NCBI GenBank assembly: GCA_020536535.1
Contig: JAHLWZ010000847.1
Location: 13,298-77,297, forward strand
Source of the DNA: Pelomyxa schiedti
Taxonomy: Eukaryota > Protista > Evosea
Reading direction: 5' to 3'
DNA length: 64,000 nucleotides
Made by a program: the position numbers and the translations under genes. Numbering within the stretch: the stretch's first letter is position 1; each line of letters starts with the position of its first letter. Positions 25,607 through 52,200 of this stretch are shown piece after piece. A model generated the notes under the pieces. That model worked only from the letters and a program-made list of their open reading frames with translations. It was not told the DNA's origin and made no database searches.

Positions 25607-28600
25607 TTATTCTGAATTTGACAAAATTTTCTCCAACTCCTGTGCCACAACACTGAAATCTGGGTTTTTTTTTTTTTGTGTTTTTGCAGTGTAAGTGGTG
25701 ACAAATAGGAAGAAAAAGAAGAACCTGGCCTTTGCTCAGGGTCCTGTGCCCAGCACGAGGAAATCAAAGTAGACAGTTCCTCAGGAAAGTCAGAGGGGAA
25801 TTCTTTGCGCTTGGGAAGAATCAGAAAGTAGAAATTACAAGGGGAATGAGAAACCTTTCCGGAGGTGACGAATTCTATAATTTCTGTGATGGAATAAGGA
25901 GTGCATTTATTGGGAATGTGAAAAAAGAGAAGAGGAAGCATACTCCAGGTTGACGGGAATGAGGAGGGGGGGTACGGGTCAGGATCAACGAGAAGGCAGT
26001 AGGCTAAAAGTGCAAAACTGTGTTTTCAATTTGTGAGTAGAGAGCAAATTTCTAGCCTAAGAGGAGAAACCTGTACACATCAGAGGGCTTACTGTAAGAC
26101 GCGTTGTTGAGTACTTCTGGGGCCATGAATGTGGGTGTCCCAACAGCAGCAGTCATGTTGGCACTTACAGTTTTTGAAGCAGACTTTGCCACATCACGGG
26201 TGGTACCAAAATCCGTGATTTTGCCACAAACATCGGAGTCCGGGTCTAAGGATGAGAGTAAGATATTGTCAGGCTTGAGGTCCCTGTGTATGATGCCACT
26301 CTACAGATCATGGTTAAGTCTGCGGGAATGGAAGGGTAAAGTACTTGGTGCAAGAAGTTCATTCCTCTGGCACAATCGACAAGAATTTTTACTTTTTGCT
26401 TTCCATACAATTTTTTATGTTTCATGACATGCCCTAAACTACCAAGGGTCATGAATTCCTGCAGAATTTTAGTAATGGAAAGAAGGTAGATGAACAACTG
26501 TCACTATGGAAAGCTGTTTCTTGAAATGTACAGCACCAATGAATTTAACTATCTGGATTGGTTTAGATTAATGGAGAAACTCGACTCGACAACCTGTGGG
26601 CAATGGAGGCTCTCCATTGTTCGCACCTAGAGAGGGGTTTTGTTGAAGTACAATAGCTTTTAGAATGCTAACCTCACTGCAAAATTCATTGTAAACTTCC
26701 ATGGAAATATCAGCACTTTTTAGAACCTGTGCCTGAGGTTTGTGCGGCAATGAAAACATCTTTAAAAAACCTTGACAGCTACATCCTGGCCACGCCATGT
26801 GCCTCTATATACAGTTCCAAACGACCCTGCCACCGTCAATGGATGAACTAAGAAAGAAGGAGAACCTTCGCCAACAGGTGGTTTCTGGAGGGTAATCTCC
26901 TCTGGATCTAAATGCGTCGACATTTTTGTCTCGACAACAAGAGGAATTTCGGTGTGCTGTATATCAATACGGCTATCAAAATTGGTTCCTTTCATTCATT
27001 TGAGAGAATTCCGTTGAGAAAATTCTACTACCACTGGCAGCTGCAAGAACAACAGAGGTGTCAAGCGCGGTTGTGCAGTGTACAACAAACTGGATTTTAA
27101 TATTTACAGTTTCTTTCTAGTTTAGGTGAGTACTTTAAAAATATGAACTACAGTACTTTGCGTAGAGTAGCTGTGCTCGGTTCAATGGCCAGCTTGTATT
27201 TATAAGACCTGATGGTCAATATATCATAATGTCATATTGTGATTGGGAGGATTACTTTGGCGGGAAGAATTTGTATGTCATTTTTTTCTTCCCTGCATTT
27301 ACAAGAGTGAAGGTTTGCGTATAGTCCTTTCCCACTGAGGCTTTGTGCCCGTGGAGTTCGAAGGCGAACTCTGAAATTGAACACTGCCCACAAAAATTAG
27401 ACGGGGGCAAAACTCTACAAAACCACATTTAATACGAAGTCAGCTAGCAGGAAATGTCTACAGCAAGTTAGGGGGACGAAGAGTTATGAGTTTCGTACTG
27501 AGAGCCTTCTGTTTCGAATTTTTCAGCAGGAGAATCATCATCGAGGAAGAGAGTGGATAATGCTTGTCCAGAAGGTTTTCTATGTTGTGAAAAAAAGGTT
27601 ATTTGATTTTAGACTTTTTATATATACCGCTTTTTCAGGTAAATTGCAGCAAGAATTGCTAAGCCAGCTAAAAGGCCAAAAAGCCCAACAGATATTCCAA
27701 TATACAAGCCATAATCAATACTATCGATATCTGGTTGGTATCAGTTTTGTCAAGTAAATTTGTTTGCTATACTAAAGTTGAAAGAAAGCTGCTCTGTCAA
27801 CTCGGCGCTATTTCCGTTGGTGTCCTTTGTGCAGCCCTCAATTAATGAGACCACACACATCATACTATCTCCCTTATCGTCGAAAATATCAAGGGAGTAG
27901 GTCTTGTTATCCAGATTCCATGGGTGGCAGTTGTTGACAGAACACCCGTCTGAGGTTTCAAAACAAGAGTCTTTTACACCTGTGACCAGTTCATCACATG
28001 TAAAGTTCACTGAAACAGATGGAGAATCTGATTGAGAGGCTCCCCCAGAAAACCAGCAAGTGGGTTTTTTCGTGTCATTGAAGTAAAAAAGGGAATAGGG
28101 CTTGGTATTTCTCACCCCATCCACAACTATCCTAACTGTGAGATTGTACCCCGAGCCTTTTTGCAGGGAGCATGATATGATTGAGTGATTTTGCACCATA
28201 TTCACGGGTTCGCATGCAATGGAATTATCAACTATGACTGTGATGCGGCTAGCAGTTGTCCCAAAGTTTGTACCTAATTTGATGTAACTCTCGAGTTGAT
28301 GTACAGGAAAGTAGCACCTGTTATGGTTGAAACACCACCATCATTTCCAACAGTAGTCATATCTTGAATTTCAGGGGCTGGAAGGTGTAAAATTGGGGTA
28401 TTTTGTATTGTAATTCTACCTGCATATGAAAACGTATTCAACGAAGCTGTAAGAGTGTTCTGGGATCTTGGTACATATACGTAGAGGATTGGAGACCCTG
28501 TGCCCTCAGGGGCATGGCATTGGATTTGAGTGTGGTCAACTGTGACTCGGGCACCCTGGCATTCAGAGTTTCCAATCTTTACTGCTACATCGGTACAACT

Positions 28601-31600
28601 CGGACCGAAATTTGTTCCAGATATGTTAATGAGCATCCCTGTTGTTGATGGTTGATTTGCCCAGGATACCGTAGGAGCTGTTTGTGGAAAATTTTTTAAT
28701 TCTAAGTCCATGGAGAATTCATGGAGAAACCTTGGTAAGTGAAAACATTGCTGCTACCTCTAGTAGGTGTTCCAGAGCAAGGAACTTCAACGGATACGTG
28801 AAGAGAAGGGCCAGCACCAACTGGTGCAATGCACTCAATGCGTGTATGATTTATCACCAACGCATTTGTGCAATTGCGTGCTATGGAGCATACATCTATT
28901 ACTGTCACACAGGCATCAGTACCAGTGGGACCAAAATTGGAGCCAGAGAGTGTTACAACTGTGCCACCAGATGTTGGGGGAGAAGGATAAACTGAATGAA
29001 TCTCTGGGTCTTTTTTTAAATAAAGCTGAGATGTAATTTAGGCAAAGATTTCGCTATACCTTTGTACCAAAAAACTTCTGCACTACCGGAAAGCCTGTGG
29101 TCTGAGTCATTATTATATACAGTTACAGTCACAGATTGGGAGGCACCAACACCCTCGGGAACAATGCACTGGATCTGAGTGTGGTTTTTGATAACTGTTG
29201 CATTCCGGCAGCTTTTCCCCCCAATTAAGACATCAACAGGAGTTCCCGCCTCACCAAAATTTGAACCAACTATATTCGTGACTATGTTGCCAGTGGTTGG
29301 AGTTGACTGGCCGTAAGAAACCTGTGGTGCTGAAGACAAGTTATTAGTTGCACTCACACGCAAATTATGCATACGGAGATATGAAAAGCTCCATGTATCA
29401 TTTTGTGAAAATGTGGCATTCTCAGAAAGTGCAGGGACATGAACAATAAGATCATACCCCTTCCCCACCCCAACTGGTGGATAGCACGTTATACAAGTCT
29501 CAGAAATTACAACGCTACTGCATTCTTGCCCCTTCACCATAACTGAGGCACTTGTACCAAAATTGGTTCCATAAATTTGTGTTGTTGTTGTTCCATCGGT
29601 GCTTGCCATTGTAACAGCAGCTATTTTTGGTGCTTGATGTAATGTTAAACAAGAAATTTCTGTGTGAATGGAAACCTGAATAATGCCAGAAATATGTATT
29701 GCTCATCTGTCCAGAAGAGTTGACCTGAGCTGAATGGAGACCCTCACTATGCCCAACTTTCAGAACGATGCAAGTAGAGTTGTAGATGTAAGAAACTCGA
29801 GAAGTGAAGTTATCCAAAATAACAAACACAGGTCTGGTGCCACCTGGCCCAAAGTTTGATCCCTACACCAGACGTCAAACACTTTCTTGAACTGAGCAGG
29901 AATACCCAAATGATGAGCGGAGAGCCTGCTGCTGTTGAGGGTTCATTTGTAAACTCAATTGCAGGACCTTCACAGTGTCAATGCAAGCATTGCGTTATCT
30001 CGAACTCTCACCTGAATAACTGAAGCCATAGAAACTGGCACATGTCCCATTTGTTTGGGGAACACATACCTCTAATAGAAGTCCTGCACCATACCCGGGT
30101 TCAACATCACAGGAGATTACAGTATCAGCCACAGTCACAATAGCATTTTTACATAAAACACCGCCAATAGTCACCATGGCAGGTGAATTAGCAGGCCCAA
30201 AATTGGTGCCACTAATGTACGTTTTACCTCCAGAGGTAGCCACTTTTGAGGAATTAACGATGGTAGGACCTGGAAAAAAGTGAATAAACTTTCAAATGAC
30301 CAGTAGCTACCTTCATAGCAGAATACAGGAAAACTTTGAGGGGGGCCAGATAAGTGGACAATTACTGGTAGATGACACCCACAACCAGGAGGTGAAATAC
30401 AAGTAACTTCAGTGTGAGCTACAGAAACAAAAGGATCCGTGCAATTCGTGGAGCCAATTTCCACGTACAGGGAAGTGTTAAGAGGTCCAAAATTGGACCC
30501 CTGCAGTTTGGTAAGTCCACCCTCCGTTATAGTTGGAGTTGCACTAAGTACAATGGGTCCTATATAATGATGAGTGCTGTATCGAGTGGAATACATAAAA
30601 ACCTGCATAGGAGAAATTGGATGATACTGCCATTTGGGTGTGCGTAGAATTGCATGGAATATACAAAGTTACTTCAATACCGTCACCGTAACCGGCAGGC
30701 GGGCTGCAAGTTATTTTTGTGCCTTCTGTGGACACAAAGGCACTTTCACAAGCGCAGATATCATTCTGGCAAGTTGCGTGGCCATGAGTGCCTGTGCCAG
30801 CTAGAGTAATACAGACACTTGAAGAGATAGGTCCGAAGTTTTCCCCCTGTGTGACCAATGGTGACTTTCCATCAGTGCTCACGCTGCTAAAAGAACGAAT
30901 AACAGGTTCTAGGACAAGGTCACAAAAAAAATAAGAGCGACTCTAAGCTTACTTTGGTAGCTAAAAGTGAACCAATTGCTGACTTGACCATCAATAGAAA
31001 CTTGAATGGTCCAGTTACTTCCAACTCCTGGTGGAAACGTGCACATTAACGTGTTGTCACTTGTCCAGTGTGCCATCACCCATGAGTCACCATCAAACGT
31101 CGAAAGTATGGGATAGTGGCCATCAGGTCCAGGTCCAAAATGGATTCCATACTATTGAGTTTAGTGGCAACAAAGTTTATACTATAGTAAGTACCAGTAT
31201 AAATTGACCTCCAGAAGTAGCAACATCATTGATAGCTTTGATCATAGGAGCTAGATTTGATTGTTATTGAGGTGAAAGATTTACCAAAACAACCTGGAAA
31301 GGAGAAGTCACTTGAGAAGACAGGTCTTGATGATCCTCGAGGTACCCACAATGTTATATTCTTATGTGTTCCCACACCGACAGGAGGACTGCAGGTTATT
31401 TGCATATGTGGTACTACAAGTACTGCAGTTTGGCACTCCTGTCCGTCGATTTCAACATAAATACTGGTTCCTGTTGGCCCAAAATTGGTTCCGTAGATGT
31501 TCACTTCGTTGGTGCTCTCAGAGTAATTGGAAAAGGTGAGGGCAGGTGCTGGATTTTTTTTTTTTTAAAAAACAAAGACACTTGTTTGCATACCATTATA

Positions 31601-34600
31601 GGAAAAGTCCGAAACAGATGACACAACAGTGTACCCAGGGCAGCCAATTTCCAGCCTAAGAGGATTGTCACATCCAACTCCAGGTGGAACAACAACAAGG
31701 GCCAAACTACTGCTGATGATAGTTGTATTACATGGGAGGTCATCAATGTATGTAAGCCCAACTGTGCCTGATGGACCAAAATTTGTTCCCACAATAGTTG
31801 AATATCCACCACTTGTATCAACCGAACTAGAATTCAACAATAGGGGGGCTGAAGACAAGAGTCAGATAAGTTCAAGTCTGGGAGAATGTGACCTGCAAAT
31901 GAGAAGTTAGGGAAGTATCCTATCTGAGTCTGAGAGCTATCTATTGGAACAAACAATTCTATCTCAACATCACTTCCTGTGGCAGGTGGGGTATAACAGG
32001 TTATTTTAGTGTGTGGTATTATGACTGTTGCATTTGTGCACTCAATTTCTGTCTTGAAGCCACAGTCATTACCGAAAACTGACATGAAAATTGCAGTCTG
32101 TGTATCTTTGGGACCAAAATTGTACCCCAATATAACAGTTAACTCATTCTCCCTGCTCGCGGATGTAATAATTGGAGCTATTTTTCATAAGCATCATGCT
32201 CTAGAAAGGAAAAAAAAAACCTTGGTAGGAAAACAGAAATGGAAGGCTGTGCTGCCCACTAACAGCGATAACGAGAGAGTGATTTCTACCAGAGAGTGCA
32301 GGGAAAAAGCATGATACAGCAGTGCTATTAATGCAGTATGTGATTTGAGGGATGCCATCGACAATACATTGTTCAGGATAAAAAGAACCGACAGCGAAAT
32401 AGTGACCCTAATCCTTGTGAATAAATCTATAACCCTCAGGAAATAAGTCTTACAGTGATAACATAGAAGCCACCAGTAGTTGAAATTTGGGGAACATAAG
32501 CAATCTCAGGTGCTAGGAGGGAATTAGTCTTAATTGGAATTAGGGAGGAGAACCAAAATATGAGAAAACAGGTGAGCTGCCGCATTGTTGTGTGCTTGGT
32601 GGAGCACAAACTTCAACCGTAAGGTTTGCTCCAGCAGAGATATTTGTGTAACAACTGACAGATGTATGATTTACTACAACTGATGCATTTGAGCAATCTG
32701 TTCCATTTATTGTCACAGAAACACGAGAGCCAATGGGCCCAAAGTTGGAGCCTCCAACAGTCACCTTCTTGGGGTTTTCCAGTTCTGTGTCAGACTTGGA
32801 ATCAATGTTTGCTGAAAGTACAACTGGCTCTGGTGTTTTGGTTATTTTTGTTTAGAGTATGGTTGGGATGCATACTGTTGTACGAAAAAATAGGATAGAT
32901 ATCGGATTTAATGCCTGCTACTTGCACCATAACATCAAGCAAAGACCCGTACCCAGGAGGAGATAAGCAAGTAATTTGGATGTGTGATGATTCCAAGTTG
33001 GTGGTTGGGGAGGTGCAGACTCGGTTCTCAATTGTCACAAAAAGTGGTGTTCCTAGAGGTCCAAAGTTGCTTCCATGTATGGTGGTAAAATTACCAGGAG
33101 TATTTGTTGAGGAGATGTTGAATATAACTGGCTCTAGAAATGTGTCATTGAAAAAAAAAAAAATTGAGAAGGCAGTACTGGAAAAACTGAAGGCTTCGAA
33201 TACCCCAGATTGATTATGAGAACCAAGTGGTAGTATAACTATTACAGTGTTGTTACTGCCAGCCCCAGCGGGGGGGAAACAAGTGATTTGGGTATGTGGT
33301 ATTGTAACCGTAGCACTTTTACATTCGCAGTTCACACAAGGTATGTTATCTCCAGTGATTGTCACAAGAAGGTTACTTTCTGTACCAAAGTTGGTGCCAT
33401 TAATAACCACTTTTTCCGATGCATCTGTTTTCACTGAGGATGTACTAGTAATTGATGGCGCTAGATTTCTGTTAGAATGAAAGAGGATCCCGGTAAGGAA
33501 AACCAGAAAATCTGAATTCCGACATGGCACTAATTTGATCTGCAACATTGACCATTAAAGGCAGGTGCGCACCCACACCAGGGGTGAAGTTGGCCAAAAT
33601 CTCTGTGTGGCTCACCCATTGTGAAGGAACCCAGGCAGTATCCACAAGAGTTTTTAAAACGTAACTGCCACCTGGTCCAAAGTTTTGTCCCTGTTTTTCT
33701 TGTTAATTTACCTTCCCAAAAGGATCAAAAAAAAAAAAAAAAACCATTATTATGTGCTGCAGGCTTCCTGCAGTTGGTACAGGATCAGTACCAATAATTA
33801 CAGGGGCTGTGATTTTTGAGTGGGGAGTGAAAAATTCAAAAGGGGAAACCTTTGTAGTGAAATATCATTGCCTCTGTTAACTGGTTTCCAACACGGAGTT
33901 TGACAGGGAGATTTGCACCAACACCGGGAGTAACTTGGCATTGAACTGAAGTGTGAGGCGTCACAAATTGAACGTTGTCACAAGCTTTGCTGTTGACAGA
34001 GAGGAAAATTGACTCAACACTGTCTCCGAAGTTCGTGCCATTGATGGTTATGCCTCCCCCAGTGGTTGAAACATCACTCACTGCCTTTATTGTTGGGGCT
34101 TTTAATAGTTAGACAAATAACTCACAGGGGCCGCCTGACCTGCATAGGAAAAAATGTAAGCCATACCCTGCTGCCAGGTCGATGTGCCATACAGTACTTT
34201 GACAATAACAAGGAGGGAGGCACCAACACCAGCTTGAGCAGAGCACTTAATTCTGGAATGAGGAATATCTACTTGTGCACTATCACATATGTGACCATCA
34301 ATAGTTACTGAAAGTGTAGCCCCTGTGTACCCCATGTTTTCACCATAAATATAAATTTCGCCTCCCTTTGTTGTTGTTGTGCTGGCATTATACAAAATTG
34401 GTGCTGTAAGAGCGTAAGTACTATAACAAAAAAGAAAAACTACAAGGTATAGACATGTTCAGGAATTCAATGGTCTGAGAATGTGTACTCGAGGCAGGAA
34501 CGGTCAACTGTAGATAATTGACTGGCTGACTTGGTGTTGCGTAAAGACACTGGATTTCGGTACAGTTCACTGTAACTTGGGGACTATTGCATGACTTGTT

Positions 34601-37600
34601 TGTATTTGTTGTGACAGTGACTACAGTTCCCTCAGGCCCAAAATTAGTCCCTGTTATCCTTAACTTGACATTCCCGTGCTCATCAGTAAAGGTACCAATA
34701 GCCACAATTGTGGGTACTGCAATGAATGTAACTTGTAGTATATGGTACCTTTACTTGTACCTGAATATGAGAAGGCATCATCACTCTGCACTGTATAACC
34801 CGGAATGGAAATCCTTACTGGGTATAATCGACCAACTCCAACAGCTGGGACACAGGAGATCACACGGTGTGCAGATGAAACAGAGGAATTTCTGCATGGT
34901 GCATTCCTTACAGACACATTCACTGGAGTGCCGATGGGGCCAAAGTTTGTACCATACACATGGATTATAGATTCTGTGCAGCAATTGGCTGTACTTACAA
35001 GACTAATAACAGGTGCTAAACCAAGTTATTACTCAATTTTTATTTCGAAGATAACCTTGGTAAGAGAATCCTTTGTATGTCACAGTTTGGTTTTGCCGAG
35101 TTGCATAGATTCTGAGTTGTAGAGTCAAGTTAACTCCTACTCCTTCTGGAGGTTTGAAGCAAATTCGTGTGTCTGAGGCAGAAGTGGTAGTAGTCCAAGT
35201 GGAGGTGCCAATTTTAACTTCAGAGTGCGTGCCACTAGGCCCCAAATTTGTACCAAAAATGCAAGCTTCTGTTGACTGGTCAGTATTTGCTGAACTCACC
35301 GTCTCAATTTGTGGATCTGCCATATTATGGTTAAAAAGGACACATCTGGGAGAGCACACATTTGTATGAAAAGAGGTACTCCTTTGATTTTTGTCCAGCA
35401 ACGTTGACAGAAATTGTGTGATTCAAACCACTACCACTGGGAATGGGGCACTCTACAAAATTTTCGTTGAGCCATGAAGTCTTCACCCAAGAAGAGTTCC
35501 CATCAATGGAGGCAAGAATAGTTGCGGAGCTGTCAGGTCCAAAGTTAGAACCCTATGCTTGTTCAATCAAGGGTTTTTTATAAGAAGTGGACCTTTATCC
35601 TGAAAGAAGTGCTGCCAGTGGTTGGTACATATTCCATTTGAATAATTTGAGGAGCTATAACATGCACTTTAGCTTTAGTTTGACATATCTATTGTTTGTT
35701 AAAACCTGCGTAACTGAATACGGAGGCGGAAGCATTTTGACTTCCAAAAACGGGTACATAAACTTCAACAAGTTGGTTTGTTCCTGTTGATACTTGTCAC
35801 TATGACCAGATGAAAAAAAAACTACAAACCAATTCCATCAGGAGTGACACATTTTAGGCTCGTATGAGATAGAACAGTAACATTTACACATTCCCTCCCA
35901 GCAATGAATGCTGTGACAGAAGTCCCTGGTGGACCAAAATTCATACCAGAAATAGAGGTAAAAGTGTGAGGATCAGAACTTGTTGCGGATAACACAGCGG
36001 GAGCTATTCTTTGTCATCAATTGACCTCCAATGGGGAAGAAATGAAAAAGGATGCACACGGTTATAGGAGAAGATGTAATCACATGTAGTCTGTCCAGTG
36101 GAAGAGCGCGGAATGGTCACACATAACAGCAGCTGTGAACCAGCACCAGGCGGTGCCAAACAGGTAATTTGGTTGTGATTTACAGATTGAGCATTTATGC
36201 AAGTCTTGTTCCCAATAGAAACCGATGCAAGGGTGCCAGGAGGTCCAAAATTAGTGCCACTGATAGTAATTGTAATATTTCCAGTGGTGTTGCACCTTGT
36301 TGATGTCCCAATTGTTGGCTCTGTAAGAATGATGAAAGGGAAATTTTTTACTAGGGCGTTATCTACCGTCATAGTCTATAACGGAAGTAGCAATCACAGT
36401 CCCTGATGCCAGCTTCACTGTAAGTGTATTGTTTTTGCCTACACCCATGGGCGCACTGCATTGAATTTCTTCTTGGCTGATAACTTCGGCATCAGAGCAG
36501 TTGAGAGCCCCAATGTAAACGGAAACTGATGAATTTTTTGCCCCAAAACCTTTCCCAGTTATGTTGATACGCCCACCACTTGAAGGGGGGCTGGTTGTTT
36601 TCACAATAATCGGATCTGGCAGAAAGTGAATAAAGCAACAGTTGGTGGCAGGAACACACTATCGTAGGAAAAATAGGTCACAGCACTGTTATTGGTAGAG
36701 GGTAGCACTACAATCACGACTTTGATGTTTTGGCCAACTCCAGGCTTTGGGGTACACGATATTTGTGTATGTTCAACAATTACATGGGCATTTGAACACT
36801 CTTCTCCTCCAATTGTAACATTAATCGGAGTTGAGAAAAACCCAAAATTACGGCCTTGTATGATTGTGTTTGCCTGATAGTTTAAAGGAGATGCTGAGTA
36901 TGCTACAGGGCCTATTGCTCATCAGAAAAGAGTTTGATTGATTGAATTATAAAACCAGAAAAGCAGAATTTATCCCATTTAAGGGTTGAACCAGAAATGG
37001 AAACATTCATAGTCAAGTTAACTCCTATACCCACAGGGAAACATCTAATCTGTGTGTTTGCGACTGTAATTCGGGCATTCCTACAGTCGTTTCCAGCAAT
37101 AGAAACTGTGACAGGAGTTCCAATAGCACCGAAATTCTGGCCAGTAATAATAGTTTCCGTACTTCCATCAGTGTCAGCTGAAGTAGTATTCAAGATAGCA
37201 GGCACTACGTTCTGTAAATCGTGGAACTATTGAGAAGTTTGCGACCTGAAAAGCTAATATGAAATTGGGGACTGGTTAACCCCCCCACAGAAACTGTGAT
37301 AGTGTGATTTCCTGAGCCCACCAGTAGGGCTGCCTTCACTGAAGTGTATGACTCCCAGATTGACGGCACTTCCGTCCCATCCAATCGTACAACAAGTGTT
37401 GTTGTAGCAGTGCCGAAATTGTATCCCTACTTTTAGTGGGTAGATGAAAACTTGTCCTGTAATCACACATGAATTGTGCAGTTACTACATCCCTCAGGAA
37501 GCAAGCCATCAATTGAGGAAATATTTGGGCCTAGAACAAATTGTAACATTGGAAATTTAGAGAAGTGTCTGTCTACCTAAATAGGTGAATGTGTTGGAGC

Positions 37601-39971: not shown

Positions 39972-40253
39972 ACAAAAATTGAGGCTGGGCCTCTGCTGAC
40001 GATATATTATGTCCCAACGAGTGGTTCGATGGTTTGTTTGTTTGGACTAATTTATTTGGAATTCGGTTGCCCCATCTGAATTGCCAGTTCGTTCCTGCTC
40101 TCTGAAGTTTGGCGCTGAGAGTGGCACTCGCACCATAACCGGAAGTCCGAGTCTTCTGCGCAGAACGTCAGCGACAAAAATAGCCTCGCGTGGCTACAAC
40201 AGCAAACCAACGAATTGTTTCGAACAAACAAACAACCAAAATTTGTGGCAACA
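39972..40253. promoter_or_regulatory. Putative bidirectional promoter shared by the two receptor kinase genes
   Basis: Only 282 bp between the divergent ATGs; CpG-rich; an (AAAC)3 tract faces each gene (40031-40045 on -, 40223-40240 on +). Confidence 0.6.
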
Positions 40254-43200
40254 ATGTACAGTACCGAAACGCGGAGTGGTGGTGGTGTCAGATCTTGCCG
40301 TAGTCGGCCAGATCTTGTTGTCTTATTGCGTGCCGCCATTGTGTGCCTTTGTTGCTGTGCGACGGCGTCACACGCGACGTCATTGGGAGGTCACGGAAAG
40401 ACCTTCGCCGAGAGGGGGACATGCACAGAGGGCACCTTTGGCGTTTTTATGCACCAGTGGGACGACGGCAAATACCAGCAGGATTGCCCGCTGGGCGTGG
40501 CCAGTGGGACTTATTGTGACACCGCACCCATCAATTTTACTTTGTCAGACAGTGTGTCACAGTCTGGGTGCATTAAATATTACGGCTACCTCCAGGTGTG
40601 GAGTGCTCCTCTCTTTGTCTGTTGCATTGTCACCCAACACATGTTCCACTTTCTGTAGTTATCATCCGGCCGACCAGAGATCAAACAGCTGAGGCTAGAC
40701 CTCTCTACAACAAGTTCTAATGAGGCCACGTTGTATCTTACTACACCTGATGACACTCTCACAGCAGGAGAGAATTATTGTACTCCAACCATAATACAAT
40801 CGCACGACCAACTCTCTAATAGACATGTACAATCATGCCCCTTGCCTCCCTCCTCTTGCTGTTTCCACTAGAACCTTGCCAGCCTATCAATTTGACCCTT
40901 ACCATTTGTACCCCTTTGAAGTCCATGTGATCCAGTGCTCTTCAGATACAGACAGTACTTTTGTGTCACTGCAATGGGCAGGTGAGGATGGTGTCTACCA
41001 AGTTATTCCTGCATCAGAGTTCATCTTTGTGGATTCCTCAGAACCTGTTATATGTGAAGCTGATGTATGTGGTAAGGACACTCTTCCCATCTTACTCTCT
41101 TTCCCACTTTTATCTCTGCTTATTTAGAACCACAATTGACAAGTTTTGAGTCCAATGCTACTACTGCTGGTGATAGTTTGGTTTATATTGAGGGTTCATG
41201 GCTTGATGAATGCACAGATGTCTTTATAGGGGGAGAACCCTGTGAAATTACAAGTGTTTCTTACCTCATCCCAGGCTATATTACATGCAAACCCCCGGTA
41301 GTAATTTGGACTCCAATTACCTATGTCTCATTTAAAGAAGGAAGGGTCCCTTGGCTTGAGTTATGATTTATGGGTTGTATGCAGAGGTGTCACTAGCAGC
41401 GAACTCACTGGTTTCACTTATCAATGTTTCTTGCCCACTCTAATATTTTGTACTCTTTTGTTAAAAGTCACTAATGCAATGTAGCACCAACAATTATCTC
41501 TGCGACAGAGGCCTTCACAGATGGGTCAACTCAAACAGTAATAAGTGGTACCAGTTTTGGTCCACAGGGTACTCTTGTTACTGTTACAATTGATGGGGAA
41601 CCATGTACTTCTGCTAGTGTTACAACACCACACACAGTCATTTCTTGCTATCCTCCTCCAGGAGTTGGTGCTGACCACGAAGTACAAGTTAACTTTCTCA
41701 CTTCAGGCGAAGTAGCAAAGGAATATGTGTTCTCCTACACGAGTAATTCTCAAACTCTTTGAACGACCCTGAGGCACTCACTCCCCCAAAGGTCCATCTA
41801 TATCTGAAGTTGTTTCCACTATAGAATCTGGAAAGCAAGCCTTAACTGTAACTGGCACAAACTTTGGGAATGAATTATCCTCCATTTCTGTGGGAGTAGA
41901 TGGATATATTTGTCAGAATGTGTCGATCCTTTTTGCTCACAAATCAGTTCTTTGTTTCCCTGACTCACATGCTGTCATTGGAAAAAATCACAAAGCATCA
42001 ATCACTGTTGAATATCAAACCAGCCCAGATTTTTCCTTTGACTTTCCAGGTGAAGTTCAATTTCCAATGTTTTTTTTTATTAACTTGGCATTTTTAAGCC
42101 CCTACAATTATGTCATGCTCCAATACACCAACGACAGGGGGGGGAATTTCAATATCTGGAAAGTTTTTTGGCGCAGCTGGGGGAGCTGCTACCAGTCCTT
42201 GGGTTTATGATATTGTTGTTCTCGGTGTTGGTGAAATTAACTGTACTATACCACCTGGGGCAGGGCAAAAACTCCCTCTGCAAGTAACAGTTGGAGGACA
42301 AGATAGCCCAATAGAATATATATACTATTTCCAGGGTATCGCTACTTTGCATGGAGTTCACTCCTGACAAACTCAAGGTCCAAAGGTTGTATCTGCTACA
42401 CCTACATCTACAACGGGAGGCTACACAACAATCGTTGGCACCAATTTTGGACCAAGTGGCACTTCTATATCTGTTACTATCGACAACAAAGAATGCAAGG
42501 AAGTGGTTATGAATCACACTGTAATTCAATGCAAGACTCCAGAAGGAGTCGGAAAAAATTTGACAGTTACTGTCACATCACCAACTGGGGTCAATGCCCA
42601 AACTGCATATGCACAAGCCTTCTCATATCAAAGTTTTTTCCTTCCAGTTAACTTAAAATTCACTTCATCAGGTCCCTTGATTACCGGAGTTATTACTGGC
42701 AATTCCTATATCACCCTCATTGTATTACATCCTCTAATCTAACTGCACTCATGGTAATGTTAGGGGCAAAATTTTGCACCAAGTGGTTACACAGGAATTA
42801 CATGCTCCAATGATGATGGAAGCACGTGGACATTTGGGGAAGCTGTAAATACAACCACAATGAAGTGTTACAGCTCTGGAAACAAAGTAATGGTAATGAT
42901 TGGAGGACAGAAAAGTAACTCGAAAATCTTCACACAAAGTAAATCTAGTTGTAATCTGTGCACACTGTTATTTACTCCCACCCCAACGACAAAACAAAAC
43001 AGCTCCCACAATAGACTTAGTTACTAGTGTTGAGACTGCAGGAGGCACTGTTAACATTATTGGTCAATGCTTTGGGTCAACTTCAGTTACTGTCTACATT
43101 GACAATAAAAAATGTGAAGTGGCACAAATTATCACCCCTAATTCGCAGATAACTTGCACAGCCCCTGCAGGTGCTGGCAAGAACTTAGATGTTCTTGTAA

Positions 43201-46200
43201 TGTTCTCTTCACCACTTGTAAATGTATCTTTCAGGGGATTTTCCTATAACTGTATTGGAACACATCTTCTTTTCACAACTTATTTCCTTAGCCCCACGGA
43301 TTTTTTCTACTACTTCTGTGGATACTATTGGAGGTTATGTTTATATTAAAGGAGACAACTTTGGCCCAGCTGGAACAACTGTAAATGTCACGATTGGCAA
43401 CAAAATGTGCTCTAATGCAAGTGTTGTTACCGCTCACACAATAATTGGCTGTTTGATGCCTCCCTCTGTTGGGGGCTCCCTTGATGTTGGGGTGAATATT
43501 CCTATTGTCCCTTCACATTCACAGGAAGCACATGCACCAATCTTCTACTTCAATGGTAATGAGCTTCTTTTTTTGTTTCTCTGATCTCATCTCCAACAGA
43601 TCCTGAAATAACGGCAGTTTCCTCCGCAGACACAGATGGACACTCGAGAGTTACTATTTACGGGAAAAATTTTGGTCCTGCAAGTGCCAGTGGTGTGAAG
43701 TTTTCAATTTTTGTGTGTCTGGATAGCAGTACCTGCTCCGAGTGTCTCAATACCTCAGTTGTTGATCACAACCATCTACAGTGTTTTCCTCCTGTAGGAG
43801 TAGGAAAGGAGTATAAATTGCTCTTGAACCTCACAACAGTAAATGGAGGTTGGGTTCAGTCTGCAGAATATGATCTTTTTGATTATAAAGGTATTCTTTC
43901 ATTTTAAAGATGTGTACATTTAGGAAAATAGATCCGCTCATTCATAATGTGTCTCACCCAAGCACTACCGGAGGAAACATCACCATATATGGGGAAAACT
44001 TTGGCCCGACTGGCACTCCAATTGCAATTCATATTGGGAGTGTGCAATGTGAAGGAGCACATATTAGCCTATCACACTTTGAAGCTAGTTGCGAAATATC
44101 TGAGGGTATTGGAGGGCCAAAAGAGGTTTATTTTGAGATTCTTCCTACAACCGAACATGCAACTAGTGTTTCTTCGAATTCATTTTTTTACAAGGGTAAG
44201 TTGACGGATTTTGTTTTGTAAGCTAATCGTTGCCCATTAGCTCCAATTATTCTGTCAGCAAAAACAGCAAGTGGTGGAGGACAAACGGAAATAAGTGGGA
44301 GTAATTTTGGTCCAACTGATACTCCCATTACAGTAACAATTGGGGGACAAACTTGTTTTTCTCCTATGGTCAAGACTGCCCATTCAAAAATTGAGTGTAC
44401 TGTTCCCACTGGTGCCGGAGTTAAGAAGGTTATCACTGTTACAGTCCCTTCAGGCTCAACAACACAGTTCTCAAGTGCCGCTCTATTCAACTACACAGGT
44501 CTATTCAAGATACAGTTGGTTCCATTAACTTTTTTTTCAGCCCCCAAGATTTCAACAGTGCCACTTGTGCCTACACTTGGGGGACTTATCCATATTCAAG
44601 TATTGACTCTGTCTTTTTTTTTTTTTGAATTAAAACACGAAGGGGTCCGACCTTGGAGCGCCATTCAACTCCATTTCTGTGTTTATCGACAGTACAAAGT
44701 CCTATTATGCAGCAATTATCAATAGTAGTACTATTCTAGCCGGGGTTCCTCCTGGTTCAGGGACAAATCATTGGGTTTATGTGTGCATTGAATCAATATG
44801 CACATCTGCCGCTCTTCTTAGTTTTCAATGTAATCTCTCCACCTTGTAAGTACTCGATTATCCAAGTTAAGTTTCCCTTTAGCGCCAGTGTTCACATCTT
44901 CTACTGGCGCCTCGACTGATGGTTCTGCCTTCACCACACTCCATGGATCCAACTTCGGTCCGATTGGCACTGTGGTGAGTGTCTATTTCCCATCGAAGGG
45001 TTCCTACTGCTTGAATGCAACAGTATCTGTGCAGCACACACAAATTAAGTGCCGTCCTCCTCCTGGTGTTGGCTTGGACAATACTATATTAATCACTGTT
45101 GGAAACACTGGAAGTGCATTATCTACAGTTAGCAATGGGTTCTCATATGATCGTAAGCAAAGAATTTTTTTTTTTGGCACCCAACCTTCACTCAGCTCCA
45201 GCACTGTCATTTGCAACTCCAGCTGATACTGTTGGGGGTATAATTACTATTTGTGGGTCCAACTTTGGTGACCTTGGAACCAATGTGACCGTGATAATTG
45301 GCCTAGCTGAATGTGAAGGAGCCAAAGTTTCACTTGCACATAAGCAAATCCAGTGCTCAGCACCAGCAGGGGTTGGCAAGAACTTGAAGGTTACACTTAA
45401 TGTTCCTCAGACTGGTTATTTATCTACTTATTCCAACATCTTTTCTTATAATCGTATGTATTTTTTTCCTATGACTGAAAGTTGACATCGAAAAAGCCCC
45501 AGTTGTTACCTCTGCTTCTGAGGTTAAAAACGGGATGTACAACATCTCAATTTTTGGGAAAAACTTTGGAACTTCCATCAGTGTTGCCGTAATGATATCC
45601 GGGAAACCCTGCACAGTGACAAGTGTCTCTCAAACGGAAATCAAATGCATTGCACCCCCTGGCTCAGGGCCTTGCCGACCAGTGATCGTCACAGTACCTG
45701 CTGGTGTAAATGCCCAGTCCAGTATGGAAGCTTATGTGCTAAATTATACTGGTAGCACCATAGATGTAGTTTTTCACTGATTTGTTATCAAAGGTCCTGG
45801 ATTTTCTAATGCCAGCACCACCACAACTGAAGGTGGTCTGACAACTATATATGGACAGAACCTGGGGGCTGTCGGTGACAGTTTGATAGTGAAAATTGAC
45901 AATAAGTTGTGTGCCAATGCCACCGTTACGAAGCTCAACTCAGAAGTTCAATGCGTTGCTCCACAAGGAGCTGGCAAAAACTTGATTGTGCATGCGACAC
46001 TAGTTGATGGGACATTCCTCACAGAGGCCCCTGTATTCTCTTATATGCGTATGCATAGATTGCGTTCTTCGTTTCTGTTGGCTGATTTTCTTCAGCACCA
46101 ACAGTGTCATCTATCTCGCATTCCGACACAATTGGGGAGGAAATCTCTCTAGTAGGAACGAATTTCGGTCCTGTGGGAACCAACATTAGTGTAATGATTG

Positions 46201-49200
46201 ACCATTTGGGGTGCTCAGAGGCATATATCACAAAGAGTCATCAAGAAATTACTTGTGTGGCCCCCGCTGGTGCAGGTATAGCTTCGGAATTACTTGTAAT
46301 TTACAAACTGACACAAAAAGGTTCAAATATCCCAACAACTGTGTGCATCCCCACTACTAATCCACAGTGTATTCATCTTTCTTTCTCTTACAATGGTTCG
46401 TTTCCCATCGGCTTGTCTTTTCTTTGAAAAAACTACAAAAAAAAAAAGCTCCTTCAATCAGTACTGTCACACCTGTTTCCACTGCTGGCGGGAATGTTAC
46501 TATAACTGTATTCCATCTCTTGATAGATCAGCGTGTTTGTTTATAGTAGTTTAGGGAAACAATTTTGGACCTGGTGGTTCATATCTTGTGGATACTTCAA
46601 CAGATGGAACTACATGGCTTCACTCAGAGCAAATTAGCCACACTATTGTAAAGGCGTTAGTGGCACCTGGCTGTGGTAAAGGCCGGAACATCACAATTCG
46701 TGTTGTGGATCAAACAAGTGTGCCTGCCCATTTCAACTATTCAGGTATGCCATCCCCAACTCTTGTGCCTTTCTGACTCCTAGAAAGCTCCTACAATATT
46801 ATCTACTTCCTCTCCAAGCACGAGAGGGGGTATTCTGACACTAACAGGCATAAACTTTGGCATTTCTGGCACTCATGTAATTGTTAATATTGGAAAGCAA
46901 CCTTGTTCGACAGCAACGGTTGCAGTTCCCCACACGGAGATAACATGCACAGCACCCTCCGGCACTGGCGTTGTACAAGGAACTCTATTAGTTCCAGATG
47001 ACCTGCGTTTCAGTCAGAGTACTTCTTTCCAAATGACATATGCAGGTATTTCAAGATTTGAGTACTCCCTTTCTAATTTTGATAATTTAGTGCCTGAGAT
47101 CTACGTCATGACTCCCACACACACGCAAGGCGGTACAACTGAAATATATGGAGATAACTTTGGCCCTGTTGGAACTCCAGTTTCAGTGGCCATCAATGGA
47201 GCATCTTGTTTGAATCCTAAAGTCGAAGTGAACCACACCAAGATTACGTGTACTGTGCAGCCTGGGTGTGGTACAACTTTGTCTGTTAAGATAAATGTTT
47301 CTTCCATATATTCTTTTACATCAATATTCTCCTTTGCAGGTTTCTCATTTCCTACCTCCTGTCTTCTCACCTTCCTGTAGGACCTTCAATAATAAATGCC
47401 ACTGCAGTTAATACCAGTGGAACAGAGGAAACCCTTATAACAGGCATAAACTTTGGGCCGCAGAATGACTCTGTTTCTGTGTTGATTGGGGGAGTTAACT
47501 GTACGGAGGCACAAGTTATTAGACCTCATCAGACAGTGTCCTGTTACCCACCACCTGGTGTTGGAGCCAATCTATCAGTTGAATTGTGCGTCCACTGCAA
47601 CGGTTTGCAATGTACCTCAGCACCTGTATTTCGTTACAGAGGTAAATCACGGTCCAAACTGTATGCTTACTTGCACTTAGAACCTGTCATAAAATATGTC
47701 CCCCCTGTGCCAACACAGGGGCAATGGATAACAGTGCTGGTTTGTTTTCTTTGGCTTTCTTTTTTCTTTTTATGAGGTTGTGCTAGGGTGATTTCTTTGG
47801 CACCATAAACAGTATTGTAACATGTGCCACAAACCCCAGTGGACCAACACCAGCACAGTGGCTAAATAATACAGCTCTTAACTGCTCTATTGGTGAAGGA
47901 CTTGGGACTGGTCTTGTTGCGGTTTGTATTGCAGGGCAATGCAGTAACTCATTCATTTTCCATTATCAAGGCGAGTACAACCGTAAAGTATTTACTCTAA
48001 TTATCATAAAAGCTCCTACCATTGATAGCATTCCATCTCCCAGTACCAATGACTCACTGCTGACAATTTTTGGAAACAACTTTGGACCCGATAATACAAT
48101 CCCATCAGTTTTCATATGCAAGGATGAATTGTGTACTTTGGCTTGTAAGAATGCAACTGTGTCCGTCAAGCACACCGTCATAACATGTCAGCTTCCTGTC
48201 AGTGTAGGGGCAGGTTATATTGTGAACGTTACCGTTGGTGGGCTTTATGGACTTGGGACCTTTTCGTTTAAAAGTACCTGGCTAATCTATTTTCCTGTCG
48301 TTTTCTAATTAATTTACCCCAGGCCCACTTATTCATAGCGCCACCTCTACCAATACCACTGGCGGTACTACAACCATTTTAGGAGAAAATTTTGGCCCAG
48401 AAAACACAACAATCATGGTGCTCTTGAACGCAGTTTCTTGTTTACACCCTGTTGTTCATTCACACAATCATATTACCTGTGAAGTACAACCAGGGTATGG
48501 TGCACTTCTAAACGTTGTGGTTATTGCACCCCTTGGTGAATATCATCAGAATGGGTCTGCTCCAGTTTTTTGCTATAACGGTAATTCCACGATATGAATT
48601 CCTAAGAGCTGATTTTTTTAGCTCCTTCTATTGTTTCCATGACTCCCACCCCCACCAGTGGGGGTATCGCCACCGTTTACGGAAACAATTTTGGACCCTC
48701 TGGGAGTCCCGCCATTGTTACTGTATCAAACTTTTCATGCAGCAACGTAACAGTTATAAATCACACTCAACTGAAGTGCAATGTCCCTCCTGGTTGTGGG
48801 GGTACTAATACTATGGTTGTGTGCCTCCCTGATACCTCGAACTGTGGCTCGCCATCCCTTTTTCTTTACATAAGTATTGTCTTGTATCTTTTATTTTAAG
48901 AATCATGTATTTAGGTCCTACAATTGTCAATATGTCTCTCCCCCCAACTAATGGAAGTTGCTCAATCCAAATTACTGTACACCACTTTTCTATATACAAT
49001 GTTTACACAATTAGGGATCGAATTTTGGGTTGCCTCTTTGTACTGTTTCTGCCATAGTGGATGGATACAGCCAATCAGCAACCATTTTATCACATACCAC
49101 GCTTTCTGTATGTGTTCCTGTTGGAAGTGGCTCAGGACATCTTATTCAAGTAGTTGTTCAGAACCTAGGGAGCAATTTGCTTACTTTTTCATATCATGGT

Positions 49201-52200
49201 TTACAACTTACTTTCCCCAAACTTACTGAGTGTTATTTCAGTTCCAGAGATAAACCGAATCGAGTCTGTGAAGACAAGTGGTGGCAAGTTGACAATTTTT
49301 GGTACGAACTTCGGACCTCTTGGGACACCTGTACTTGTTTCTTTGGAGGGGCTGGGAGTGCAGTGCTCACATACACCAAAATGCATTTGTTCCAACGCAT
49401 CTATTTCTATTGCCCACACCGAGATATCTTGTTCTGCACCTCCTGGTGTTGGAGGGGACCACACCATTAATATTACCATCCCCGCAAATAATTATGGATT
49501 GAGCACCAGTAGCAATATTTTTGCGTATTCAAGTTTGTCTCTATGCCTTTACCTTTTTCCTAATCTCTCATAGGCCCTATTGTGACATCAACCTCACCAA
49601 CAAGTACTACAGGTGGCATAACTGTGATTGAAGGGGACAACTTTGGCTTGTCCAATACCACTATCGCCGTCTATTTATTTGTACTGGGAAACTACTCCCG
49701 GTGTACTGATCTTTCAGTCTCCATTCCCCATTTGGAACTGCAGTGCAGGATGCCAGAGGGCTATGGAGAAAATTTGCCACTAAAAATTACTATTCTAGAA
49801 GGATACCCAGGCTCTCAATCTGTGGATGCATCATTTTCCTACCAAGGTTTTTTGCCACCTCTTTCAATTTTTTTCTCATATATTTCCAGCGCCAGTTGTT
49901 TTAAGTTCAACACAAACCAATACAACTGGAGGCATCGTTCAGATAACTGGGGTGAACTTTGGTCCCCTGGCACTGACAGACATCACAGTGACAATTGCTG
50001 GAACAAAGTGCAAGAATCCAAATGTCTCCGTTGCTCACACACAAGTCACTTGCACGGCCGATAAAGGAGCAGGGGCACAGCAATTGATTGAAGTTACAGT
50101 ACCTGCAGGAAGTAATCAACAAGGGAGGGCCTATGTTTTTAGCTATTTCCGTGCGTTTTGCTTTCCACAGTTCGAACTCCCCATGTAATGTTACATAGGT
50201 CCCCAAATTACCTATGTGCCACCAGTACCTACTACAGCCAGCAAGCCTGTCCACCTCATTCAGGTCTCTATTCTCAATCTAGTGTCTCCTTACTAAGCCT
50301 GTAGGGGGTGAACTTTTCTCCTTTTAATAATATTTCTGCACTCGTTGTTATTGAGGGAATTACTACGGTTGCTACATGGGATAGTGCAACTAGTATCTAT
50401 GCCTCATTCCCTGAAGGAGTGGGTGCCAATCTTTCACTTACAGTCACTGTGGCCAATCAAACAAGCGACAACTTCCTATGGAATTACCAACGTATGACTT
50501 CATTTTTTCTCCCTTTTCTCATCCCAGACAGCACCTGTTATTGAGTTTGTTAGTGAAGCCCCTGATGAGAACCAAGTTGGAATAACTATTGGTGGTAGTG
50601 CCTTTGGCAAGCAAGGTGACAACATCTTTGTCTTTCTAGATTCAGTGCCTTCTGTTGCATGCAGTAATGTGGAAGTTACTATCCCTGATGTACTACTGTG
50701 GTGTGCTATGCCCCCCGACTACGTTTGGAGTGGAGGTGTCTCTGTTATTGTTCCTTTTGTTCCAGGCCATAAGCAACAAGGAGACTACTTACGGACCACA
50801 TCTGCTCCCGTTATAAGTTATGTAACATCAGTGGACACAACTGGTGGAAGCATAACCATAATTGGGAATAACTTATGGAATTCCCATACCGTTGTTGTAA
50901 CTGTGGGGAATAGTAGTTGCAACAATGTAACAGTTGACCCACCCACAGTAGTTACCTGTATAGCTCCGCCCGGTGTAGGATCTGGCCTTCGAGTTACAGT
51001 GTCAGTAGGCGATTTGAAAGGAGAATTTCCTTCATTTTCGTACAATGGTATTCCCAGATGTAAGCAACTTCTGCACTAACTATGTGACACAAAAAAGCAC
51101 CTATAATCCTGTCCGCCACACCTGCACCAACAGTTGGTACTGTTACCACAACGATCTATGGAAATAACTTTGGGCCTGTTGGCACACCTGTTACTGTTAT
51201 GTTGGAGTTCACAGATGAGCCTGGTGTTCTAAAGGAGTGCAATAACGGTGGCAACCAAACCCTCGTTACCGCCGAGGGCAAGATTACATGTATGCCTCCT
51301 CCCGGCTGTGGGAGTGGACACTCCATACATGTAACAGTTCCGTCAAATTTGCCATCAACAGAGTCATTAACAAGCAGCGCAGCTGTTTTCTCGTATGAGA
51401 GTATGTATTGACAATCTAAGCTCCAAACTAAATATTTAACAGTTCCGCGCCCTCTCACCACTTCTTCTGTTGATACAACCGGTGGATACATTTTTATAAA
51501 TGGCACCAACTTCTGTGATTCAACCACAAGTGCAACTGTGACAATAGAGAAAATACCTTGCACAAATGCAACAATTTTAACCCCAACATCTATTGCTTGC
51601 TTGGCTCCAGCTGGCACAGGGCAGGGAAAATGTATTGAAATTACTATTCCTGCAGGATCTGACCAAACAAGCAATTTGTGCACATTCCACTATAACGGTT
51701 TAGAAACGAAACCTTTTCTTTTTAATGAATCTCCTCTAGATCCTGTTATTTACTCTGCCACCAACGTCTCTACGGAAGGAGGTGTAACAAGTATTTCTGG
51801 TATTTCAGTCCCTTCTCGCATTCTTTCTGACCTTAAAAAGGGTTGAATTTTGGGAAAGATTCCAGCATAATTACTGTAAAAATTGAGCAGAACGTTTGTG
51901 GAAATGTCACAATCCTTGACGACCATGTTCTTTTGTCGTGCGTTGCTCCGGCAGGAATTGGTACCAACCTCCAGCTTTCCGTAACTGTTGGAGTGCAAAA
52001 GTCTAGTGCTTTCAATGGCTTTTCTTACGTTGATGTGACACCGCCATACTGCCAACTTTACGCAGGATTTACTGAATCGTCATCAACAAAATTTGTTGTT
52101 GATCTTCAATGCCGAGAAATTGTCTATAACGTATCTACATCGGCGTTCACTGCGAGTGGCTGTGCTGTGGAACACAAGTTAGACACAACCCCAAGGCAGA

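Follow-up and report, generated by a model that had tools for sequence, protein, structure and literature searches.

Two giant genes, A and B, stand head to head on the minus and plus strands of a 64,000-nucleotide window (the whole stretch analysed, from contig JAHLWZ010000847.1) of Pelomyxa schiedti, a free-living, anaerobic amoeba belonging to the Archamoebae. Each encodes an array of 35 IPT/TIG repeats in which variant repeats occupy the same seven positions. Two further genes, on other contigs, share this layout. We think it likely that the 35-repeat layout is an old architecture, stably inherited and in part built from blocks, whose constant number would seem to follow, across the whole family, from divergence of the repeats and ordinary constraint. 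A and B are most likely single-pass receptor kinases, in which a stiff rod would hold an N-terminal head far from the membrane. Animals have receptor kinases with IPT/TIG domains (Met and RON), and Dictyostelium has membrane proteins made of IPT repeats (Tgr). A 35-domain IPT/TIG receptor kinase with a fixed internal pattern is previously undescribed as far as the Pelomyxa and Mastigamoeba literature that we searched is concerned; no mention of one was found there.

The repeats were located with a family hidden Markov model (HMM) seeded from 27 clean repeats of the window and scanned over all stop-free stretches. GT-AG introns were enumerated between consecutive matches, and spliced models were built by a dynamic-programming parser trained on unambiguous junctions; read-through of stop-free introns was corrected by a linker-length rule that reproduced the manual picks. 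On the spliced models the family HMM finds 35 repeats in A and 35 in B. This agrees with the manual count of an original prediction made from the sequence, and the automated counts of the two genes do not differ. Pfam was run exon by exon and on deposited proteins. At E ≤ 0.01 the Pfam TIG family (PF01833) matches 29 of the 35 exon pieces of A and 31 of the 35 of B, most of those missed being half-domain exons of split variant repeats. Exons scored singly against PF01833 reach 28–56 bits, passing the gathering score of 20.9 bits. The variant repeats, mostly missed by Pfam, are recovered by the family HMM.

The two arrays also carry the same internal landmarks. Variant repeats are found at positions 6, 12, 18, 22, 26, 30 and 35 of both genes, each with an intron just before the GxNFG motif, as had been predicted; from position 6 to position 30 this intron has phase 0, and in repeat 35 it has phase 1. 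This subtype is without the conserved Cys pair, and often has GxNFGPGG together with a Trp. Both genes interrupt repeat 1 with a phase-0 intron at the same point (separating TCQLG from EGS in A and TCKPP from EGS in B), NFGPGGSY is common to repeat 18 of A and B, and Cys extensions mark repeats 23 and 27 of each gene, all of which had likewise been noticed from the sequence and is borne out by the spliced models. A has a further Cys-extended repeat at position 19, and B has one at position 9.

How general is this layout within the genome? Querying the P. schiedti genome with the last repeat and the membrane-proximal module reveals at least eight further loci. A count of repeats in other paralogues had been proposed as a check, and genes on contigs C788 and C218 indeed share the 35-repeat layout and the intron map. 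The family HMM finds 35 domains in C788, and 34 in C218, to which alignment adds a repeat-1 homologue (the deposited C218 protein has 28 Pfam TIG stretches). The variants of both fall at the same seven positions as those of A and B. The claim that neither count nor register has changed although the genes have diverged heavily is thus upheld in all four long copies, each with 35 repeats, the same landmarks and the same intron map, at 33–40% identity. The summed array lengths are 3028, 3043, 3042 and 3035 amino acids, within 0.5% of each other. In a free MAFFT alignment of the four ectodomains repeat k falls in essentially one column across the genes, for all 35 repeats. In every one of the six gene pairs the main diagonal is prominent (z 6.0–16.6), and the shifted diagonals are flat. 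The four genes form two clades, A with C218 and B with C788. Reciprocal best matches on the diagonal number 16 for A–C218 and 19 for B–C788, and only 2 to 6 between clades; in the repeat tree A and C218 are sisters at 11 positions, and B and C788 at 15.

The intron map is evidence for the register that is independent of sequence similarity. The introns inside repeat 1, inside the variants and, in phase 1, inside repeat 35 are common to A, B, C788 and C218, with a single loss, that of the internal intron of repeat 30 in C218. Two other single losses are found, at the boundary of repeats 31 and 32 in B and that of repeats 23 and 24 in C788. An extra phase-1 intron following PxGxG, at model position 66, is a clade-specific marker, occurring in repeat 11 only in A and C218 and in repeat 17 only in B and C788.

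Between A and B themselves, whose ectodomains are 33% identical, the predicted correspondence of position-matched repeats holds only statistically. The expectation was that such repeats would be reciprocal best matches lying on one diagonal. The diagonal is there, with a mean score of 111 versus 86 (z 7.2, or 4.5 among the canonical repeats only), and diagonals displaced by 1–6 units are flat. The reciprocal matches largely are not: the best match lies at the same position in 6 of 35 rows and in 4 to 6 of 35 columns, and reciprocally in just 3 of 35. Judged by best matches, one-to-one orthology between the repeats of A and those of B therefore mostly fails, because matched repeats are only 33.5% identical compared with 29.6% for unmatched ones. 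Clustering of the repeats by gene, named at the outset as the contrary outcome, is not seen in a tree of the 140 repeats of the four genes. Position labels require 86 changes (123 when shuffled) and gene labels 87 (78 when shuffled), and therefore the repeats are not clustered by gene. All four copies fall in one clade only at position 35. Used as a test of the A/B register, neither Cys count nor repeat length gives a correlation.

Part of the array preserves a record of its construction. With similarity averaged over the four genes, a period of four is evident at positions 19–30, where repeats 19, 23 and 27, repeats 20, 24 and 28, and repeats 21, 25 and 29 are alike. The within-phase score exceeds the between-phase score by 19.4 (p = 0.0036, about the smallest value attainable for the design). 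Because repeats of the same phase are more alike than other pairs, repeats 19–30 appear to derive from triplication of a four-domain block. A corresponding period of six at positions 2–17 is not significant (p = 0.13). The variants are spaced by 6, 6, 6, 4, 4, 4 and 5 repeats, and this spacing reflects old block duplications, at least in part. We also note that the 19/23/27 phase of the super-repeat is that of the Cys-extended repeats (23 and 27 in both genes, 19 in A).

The repeats have the fold expected of IPT domains. An AlphaFold2 (AF2) model of A repeats 17-18-19, calculated from an alignment of 21 canonical–variant–canonical units taken from deposited proteins, is all-beta with a mean predicted local distance difference test score (pLDDT) of 95.7 and a predicted template modelling score (pTM) of 0.86. 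Since this includes variant repeat 18, the variant is likewise predicted to be an immunoglobulin (Ig)-like domain, and the three domains are modelled in a defined mutual arrangement. The best Foldseek matches of the model are plexin A1 IPT3-6 (E 1.9e-9), Met IPT and the Ig tandems of titin.

We propose the following origin for the constant count. A and B would be paralogues of long standing in a subfamily of giant single-pass receptor kinases specific to Pelomyxa. The 35-domain layout, with its seven disulfide-less variants at fixed positions, would have arisen once, before the A-type and B-type genes separated, with at least part of it coming from block duplication (a four-domain unit present three times at positions 19–30). 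It would then have been passed on unchanged through at least three gene duplications. The number probably stays fixed for two reasons: the repeats are by now too diverged for unequal recombination, and purifying selection on a rigid multi-domain ectodomain presumably removes in-frame losses and gains of domains.

The original prediction took as its premise that arrays of this kind gain and lose units quickly. Rapid gain and loss has been documented for stalks with nearly identical DNA repeats (PMC8201768), and the premise fits such repeats; it does not fit the present arrays, whose repeats are diverged and have no significant similarity in DNA. Repeats within one gene have a mean protein identity of 29–31%. 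Tandem Repeats Finder reports nothing, blastn of each gene against itself gives nothing for A and three short matches for B, and blastn of A against B gives two trivial matches, neither in register. Because the repeats share no DNA similarity, unequal crossover is left without a substrate. Other subfamilies keep their counts in the same manner. Proteins P0007 and P0013 have 11 repeats each at 35% identity, and P0015 and P0020 have 10 each at 40%. C714 and C471 have one common pattern of about 15 repeats, and P0004 is in register with the last 20 of the 29 domains of P0006. Since counts are kept in these subfamilies at 35–40% identity, a stable count looks like a general property of the family that calls for no special ruler at 35. 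The arrays offer a natural example of how divergence of the repeats leaves a very long array of domains frozen in number and order, the opposite of the variable-length stalks of bacteria. A single genome with subfamilies of 10, 11, about 15, 29 and 35 domains also allows one to ask whether stalk length matters for sensing.

Four points weigh against this interpretation. The single-cell assembly is fragmented (5337 contigs), and further copies with other counts may exist. The exon models of A and B rest on GT-AG sites, reading frame and homology, and may differ in places from the true transcripts. In the deposited annotation A is split and parts of B are missing. Lastly, four identical counts in four copies, with lengths within 0.5%, could reflect active selection on length as well as low mutational input.

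That last point leads to the best of the alternatives, in which the number 35, or a length of about 140 nm, is itself selected, for example to set the distance of the head from the membrane or to carry it beyond the cell coat. We regard this as possible, if rather unlikely. All four long copies hold 35 repeats at 33–40% identity, with summed lengths of 3028–3043 amino acids. Moreover, since nearly all repeats are phase-1/phase-1 exons, loss of a single repeat would keep the frame, yet no such loss is seen. The three-domain AF2 model is confidently rigid (pTM 0.86), and the period-four super-repeat is reminiscent of titin, a comparison drawn from general knowledge. Against these stand the relatives in the same genome that function with 10, 11, about 15 or 29 repeats, each subfamily holding to its own count, and the expectation that repeats lacking DNA similarity will in any case be gained and lost at a low rate (PMC8201768). 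The figure of 140 nm is itself only arithmetic, 35 domains at about 4 nm each. The suggestion of selection on stalk length or on domain-by-domain pairing thus survives in part: the constant count on which it was founded is real, a ruler is not needed to account for it, and pairing receives no direct support.

Pairing would mean that A and B, expressed from a shared bidirectional promoter, bind one another with each domain facing its counterpart, either in cis or from cell to cell, as a receptor–ligand pair like TgrB1/TgrC1 of Dictyostelium. Like A and B, the Tgr proteins are amoebozoan single-pass membrane proteins composed of IPT/Ig-like repeats. The deposited start codons of A and B lie about 650 bp apart, which fits a shared promoter, and the two genes are equal in repeat number and landmarks. 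The canonical TgrB1 and TgrC1 genes stand head to head with a shared promoter, and this arrangement marks a functional receptor–ligand pair among the tgr genes (PMC13648343). We nevertheless consider the proposal improbable. It is weakened because the other paralogues are not in head-to-head pairs: the DNA analysed for seven other paralogue loci has no TIG repeat on the opposite strand, including about 5 kb upstream of C788 and 3–4 kb upstream of C218, so that A and B are paired and the other paralogues examined are solitary. Each of A and B has an apparently active kinase, judged by its motifs, whereas to our knowledge Tgr proteins have no kinase domain, and the match to Pfam Ig_TgrO1 (17.1 bits) is below the cut-off of 27.9. 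A stricter form, in which A and B would be a matched-length recognition pair whose rods zip together in register (in cis or between cells), the seven variants serving as docking or hinge points, we judge more improbable still. Were it true, a change of count in either partner would break the A/B pair, and the pair would be a receptor-kinase form of amoebozoan self-recognition in an anaerobic amoeba that is never multicellular.

Concerted evolution, in which gene conversion or recent homogenization between neighbours keeps the counts of A and B equal, is suggested by the adjacency of the genes but is hardly credible and already contradicted, since their DNA has only two trivial, out-of-register matches, the proteins are 33% identical, A is closer to C218 and B to C788 (both on other contigs), and the repeats are not clustered by gene.

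The 35-repeat genes can be placed among shorter relatives. A library-wide search with the last repeat and the membrane-proximal module returned P. schiedti paralogues and relatives with 10–14 repeats from transcriptomes of Mastigella eilhardi. It found no 35-repeat protein from another organism, which is weak evidence because transcriptome assemblies rarely recover a 12-kb message. The shorter TIG kinases of P. schiedti and M. eilhardi have the same Cys-rich membrane-proximal module, transmembrane helix, intracellular module and kinase, and their TIG domains fall into the same pair of subtypes, the canonical, which has a Cys pair, and the variant, which has GxNFGPGG followed by W. They differ in having 10–15 or 29 repeats and, in some, leucine-rich repeat (LRR)-like N-termini. 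Read from their sequences, P0007, P0013, P0015 and P0020 (C832, C1056, C291 and one more) have LRR-like, Cys-rich N-termini, then 10–11 TIG repeats, then a cytoplasmic module of the A/B type. More long TIG arrays, judged from the deposited proteins P0004 and P0006 and from match coordinates, are present on C790, C171, C225, C450, C639, C576, C22 and C170, without the A/B membrane-proximal module; the matches on C790, C171, C225 and C450 span 7–9 kb.

Outside this group one comparison is with Met, RON and plexin, whose ectodomains have IPT/TIG domains next to the membrane; the repeats of A and B belong to this type by Pfam and by fold. Met is also a single-pass receptor with a cytoplasmic kinase. 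There are four IPT domains in Met and six in plexin A, in contrast to the 35 of A and B, which also have an extra, beta-sandwich-like intracellular module before the kinase. Neither a Sema nor a PSI domain is among the Pfam families of P0001, P0003 and P0009, and the N-terminal exon of B matches no Pfam family. The A-band super-repeats of titin are likewise built into a long Ig-like rod in which domains of the same phase are more alike than neighbours. Titin is a sarcomeric filament, however, whereas A and B are predicted to form the extracellular stalk of a receptor, with a super-repeat of period four that is significant only for 12 of 35 positions. The stalks of bacterial Periscope proteins and fibrillar adhesins resemble A and B as repetitive rods projecting a terminal domain off the cell surface; in Periscope proteins the DNA repeats are highly identical and change rapidly in number (PMC8201768), while those of A and B are diverged and fixed in number.

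Genes A and B each run from an N-terminal head through the 35 TIG repeats to a Cys-rich membrane-proximal module, a transmembrane helix, an intracellular module and a kinase (Table 1). The head comprises roughly 130–300 residues and may bind a ligand. Pfam has no family for the Cys-rich module of either A or B. The intracellular module of the C218 protein has a weak, below-threshold match to domain 6 of Cep192 (Cep192_D6), a PapD-like beta-sandwich. Pfam recognizes a full kinase domain in the deposited proteins P0001 and P0003, and the kinase exon scores higher with the Pkinase than with the Tyr-kinase model. VAVK, HRDLK and DFG can be read in the translations, so the catalytic motifs appear intact and the kinase would be capable of signalling.

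Table 1. Positions of the elements of genes A and B in the window, with the evidence on which each assignment is based.
Feature	Position	Strand	Basis
Gene A, whole span (ends approximate)	25723..39797	-	spliced model; tblastn of deposited N-terminus P0009 and C218 cytoplasmic part
A kinase exons (GSFGTVYRG, VAVK, HRDLKPDN, DFG, APE)	25723..26995	-	Pkinase 7e-19 on one exon
A conserved module, about 100 residues, between transmembrane helix and kinase (…FKFFP…YKYK…)	27027-27386	-	
A transmembrane-helix exon, GISVGLFGLLAGLAILAAIYL	27621..27740	-	read from translation
A Cys-rich membrane-proximal module	27753..28076	-	homologous to module of B, C788, C218 and shorter relatives
A array of 35 IPT/TIG repeats; most repeats are single phase-1/phase-1 exons, with introns of about 43 nt	28077..39006	-	family HMM, spliced model
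A repeat 35, phase-1 intron before GTNFG	28077..28377	-	spliced model
A variant repeat 30	29676..29967	-	spliced model
A variant repeat 26	30953..31250	-	spliced model
A variant repeat 22	32221..32512	-	spliced model
A variant repeat 18, GQNFGPGGSY	33504..33806	-	spliced model; AF2 model of repeats 17-19
A variant repeat 12	35360..35672	-	spliced model
A variant repeat 6, mini-exon and GYNFG exon, phase-0 intron	37246..37530	-	spliced model
A period-4 super-repeat, repeats 19-30	about 29998-33473	-	repeat similarity
A repeat 11, extra phase-1 intron	35783-35830	-	intron map
A N-terminal head exons upstream of repeat 1 (last one enters start of repeat 1)	39042..39797	-	tblastn of P0009 residues 7-190
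Spacer between deposited start codons, about 650 bp, G+C-rich; candidate shared bidirectional 5' region	39798..40448	.	deposited N-terminus positions
Gene B, whole span, KAH3746093.1 (3' end approximate)	40449..54439	+	spliced model and deposited protein
B array, 35 IPT/TIG repeats	41121..52031	+	family HMM, spliced model
B variant repeat 6	42672..42947	+	spliced model
B variant repeat 12	44541..44829	+	spliced model
B variant repeat 18, GNNFGPGGSY	46449..46744	+	spliced model
B variant repeat 22	47681..47972	+	spliced model
B variant repeat 26	48915..49198	+	spliced model
B variant repeat 30	50199..50491	+	spliced model
B repeat 35, phase-1 intron before GLNFG	51740..52031	+	spliced model
B repeat 17, extra phase-1 intron	46276-46320	+	intron map
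B period-4 super-repeat, repeats 19-30	46788-50152	+	repeat similarity
Single intron-loss site, B repeats 31-32 (window)	50532-51047	+	intron map
Single intron-loss site outside the window	L034:4844-5086	-	intron map
B Cys-rich membrane-proximal module	52032..52329	+	homology
B transmembrane-helix exon	52373..52500	+	spliced model
B conserved module of about 100 residues between transmembrane helix and kinase	52736-52924	+	
B kinase exons	53212..54439	+	P0001 PK_Tyr_Ser-Thr 2.3e-58; Pkinase 1.2e-11 on one exon

The deposited annotation gives a different impression of these genes. B corresponds to KAH3746093.1 (P0001, 3509 amino acids) and the first two thirds of A to KAH3746092.1 (P0009), which is named 'zymogen granule membrane glycoprotein'. 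The latter stops within repeat 23, where it reads into a canonical 44-nt intron (FSFAGHILPDLNLSDSCLQPPYC; 31837-32184, minus strand). In the spliced model of A the frame continues past that end into 12 more repeats, the transmembrane helix and the kinase, and A is probably a single gene divided by the annotation. KAH3746093.1 omits or truncates parts of repeats, such as 3-4, 9-10, 18, 24, 26 and 33, and gives only 32 domains with the family HMM and 21 Pfam TIG stretches. Because the deposited models at both loci are wrong in detail, repeat counts taken from database proteins mislead, and would falsely suggest that A and B differ. The genome paper on P. schiedti gives a figure of 7.4 introns per gene and makes no mention of A or B (PMC8887013). 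Where the two genes face each other, between positions 39600 and 40100, the DNA is G+C-rich and of low complexity with long stop-free frames on both strands, overlapping the deposited first exon of A and the intergenic spacer.

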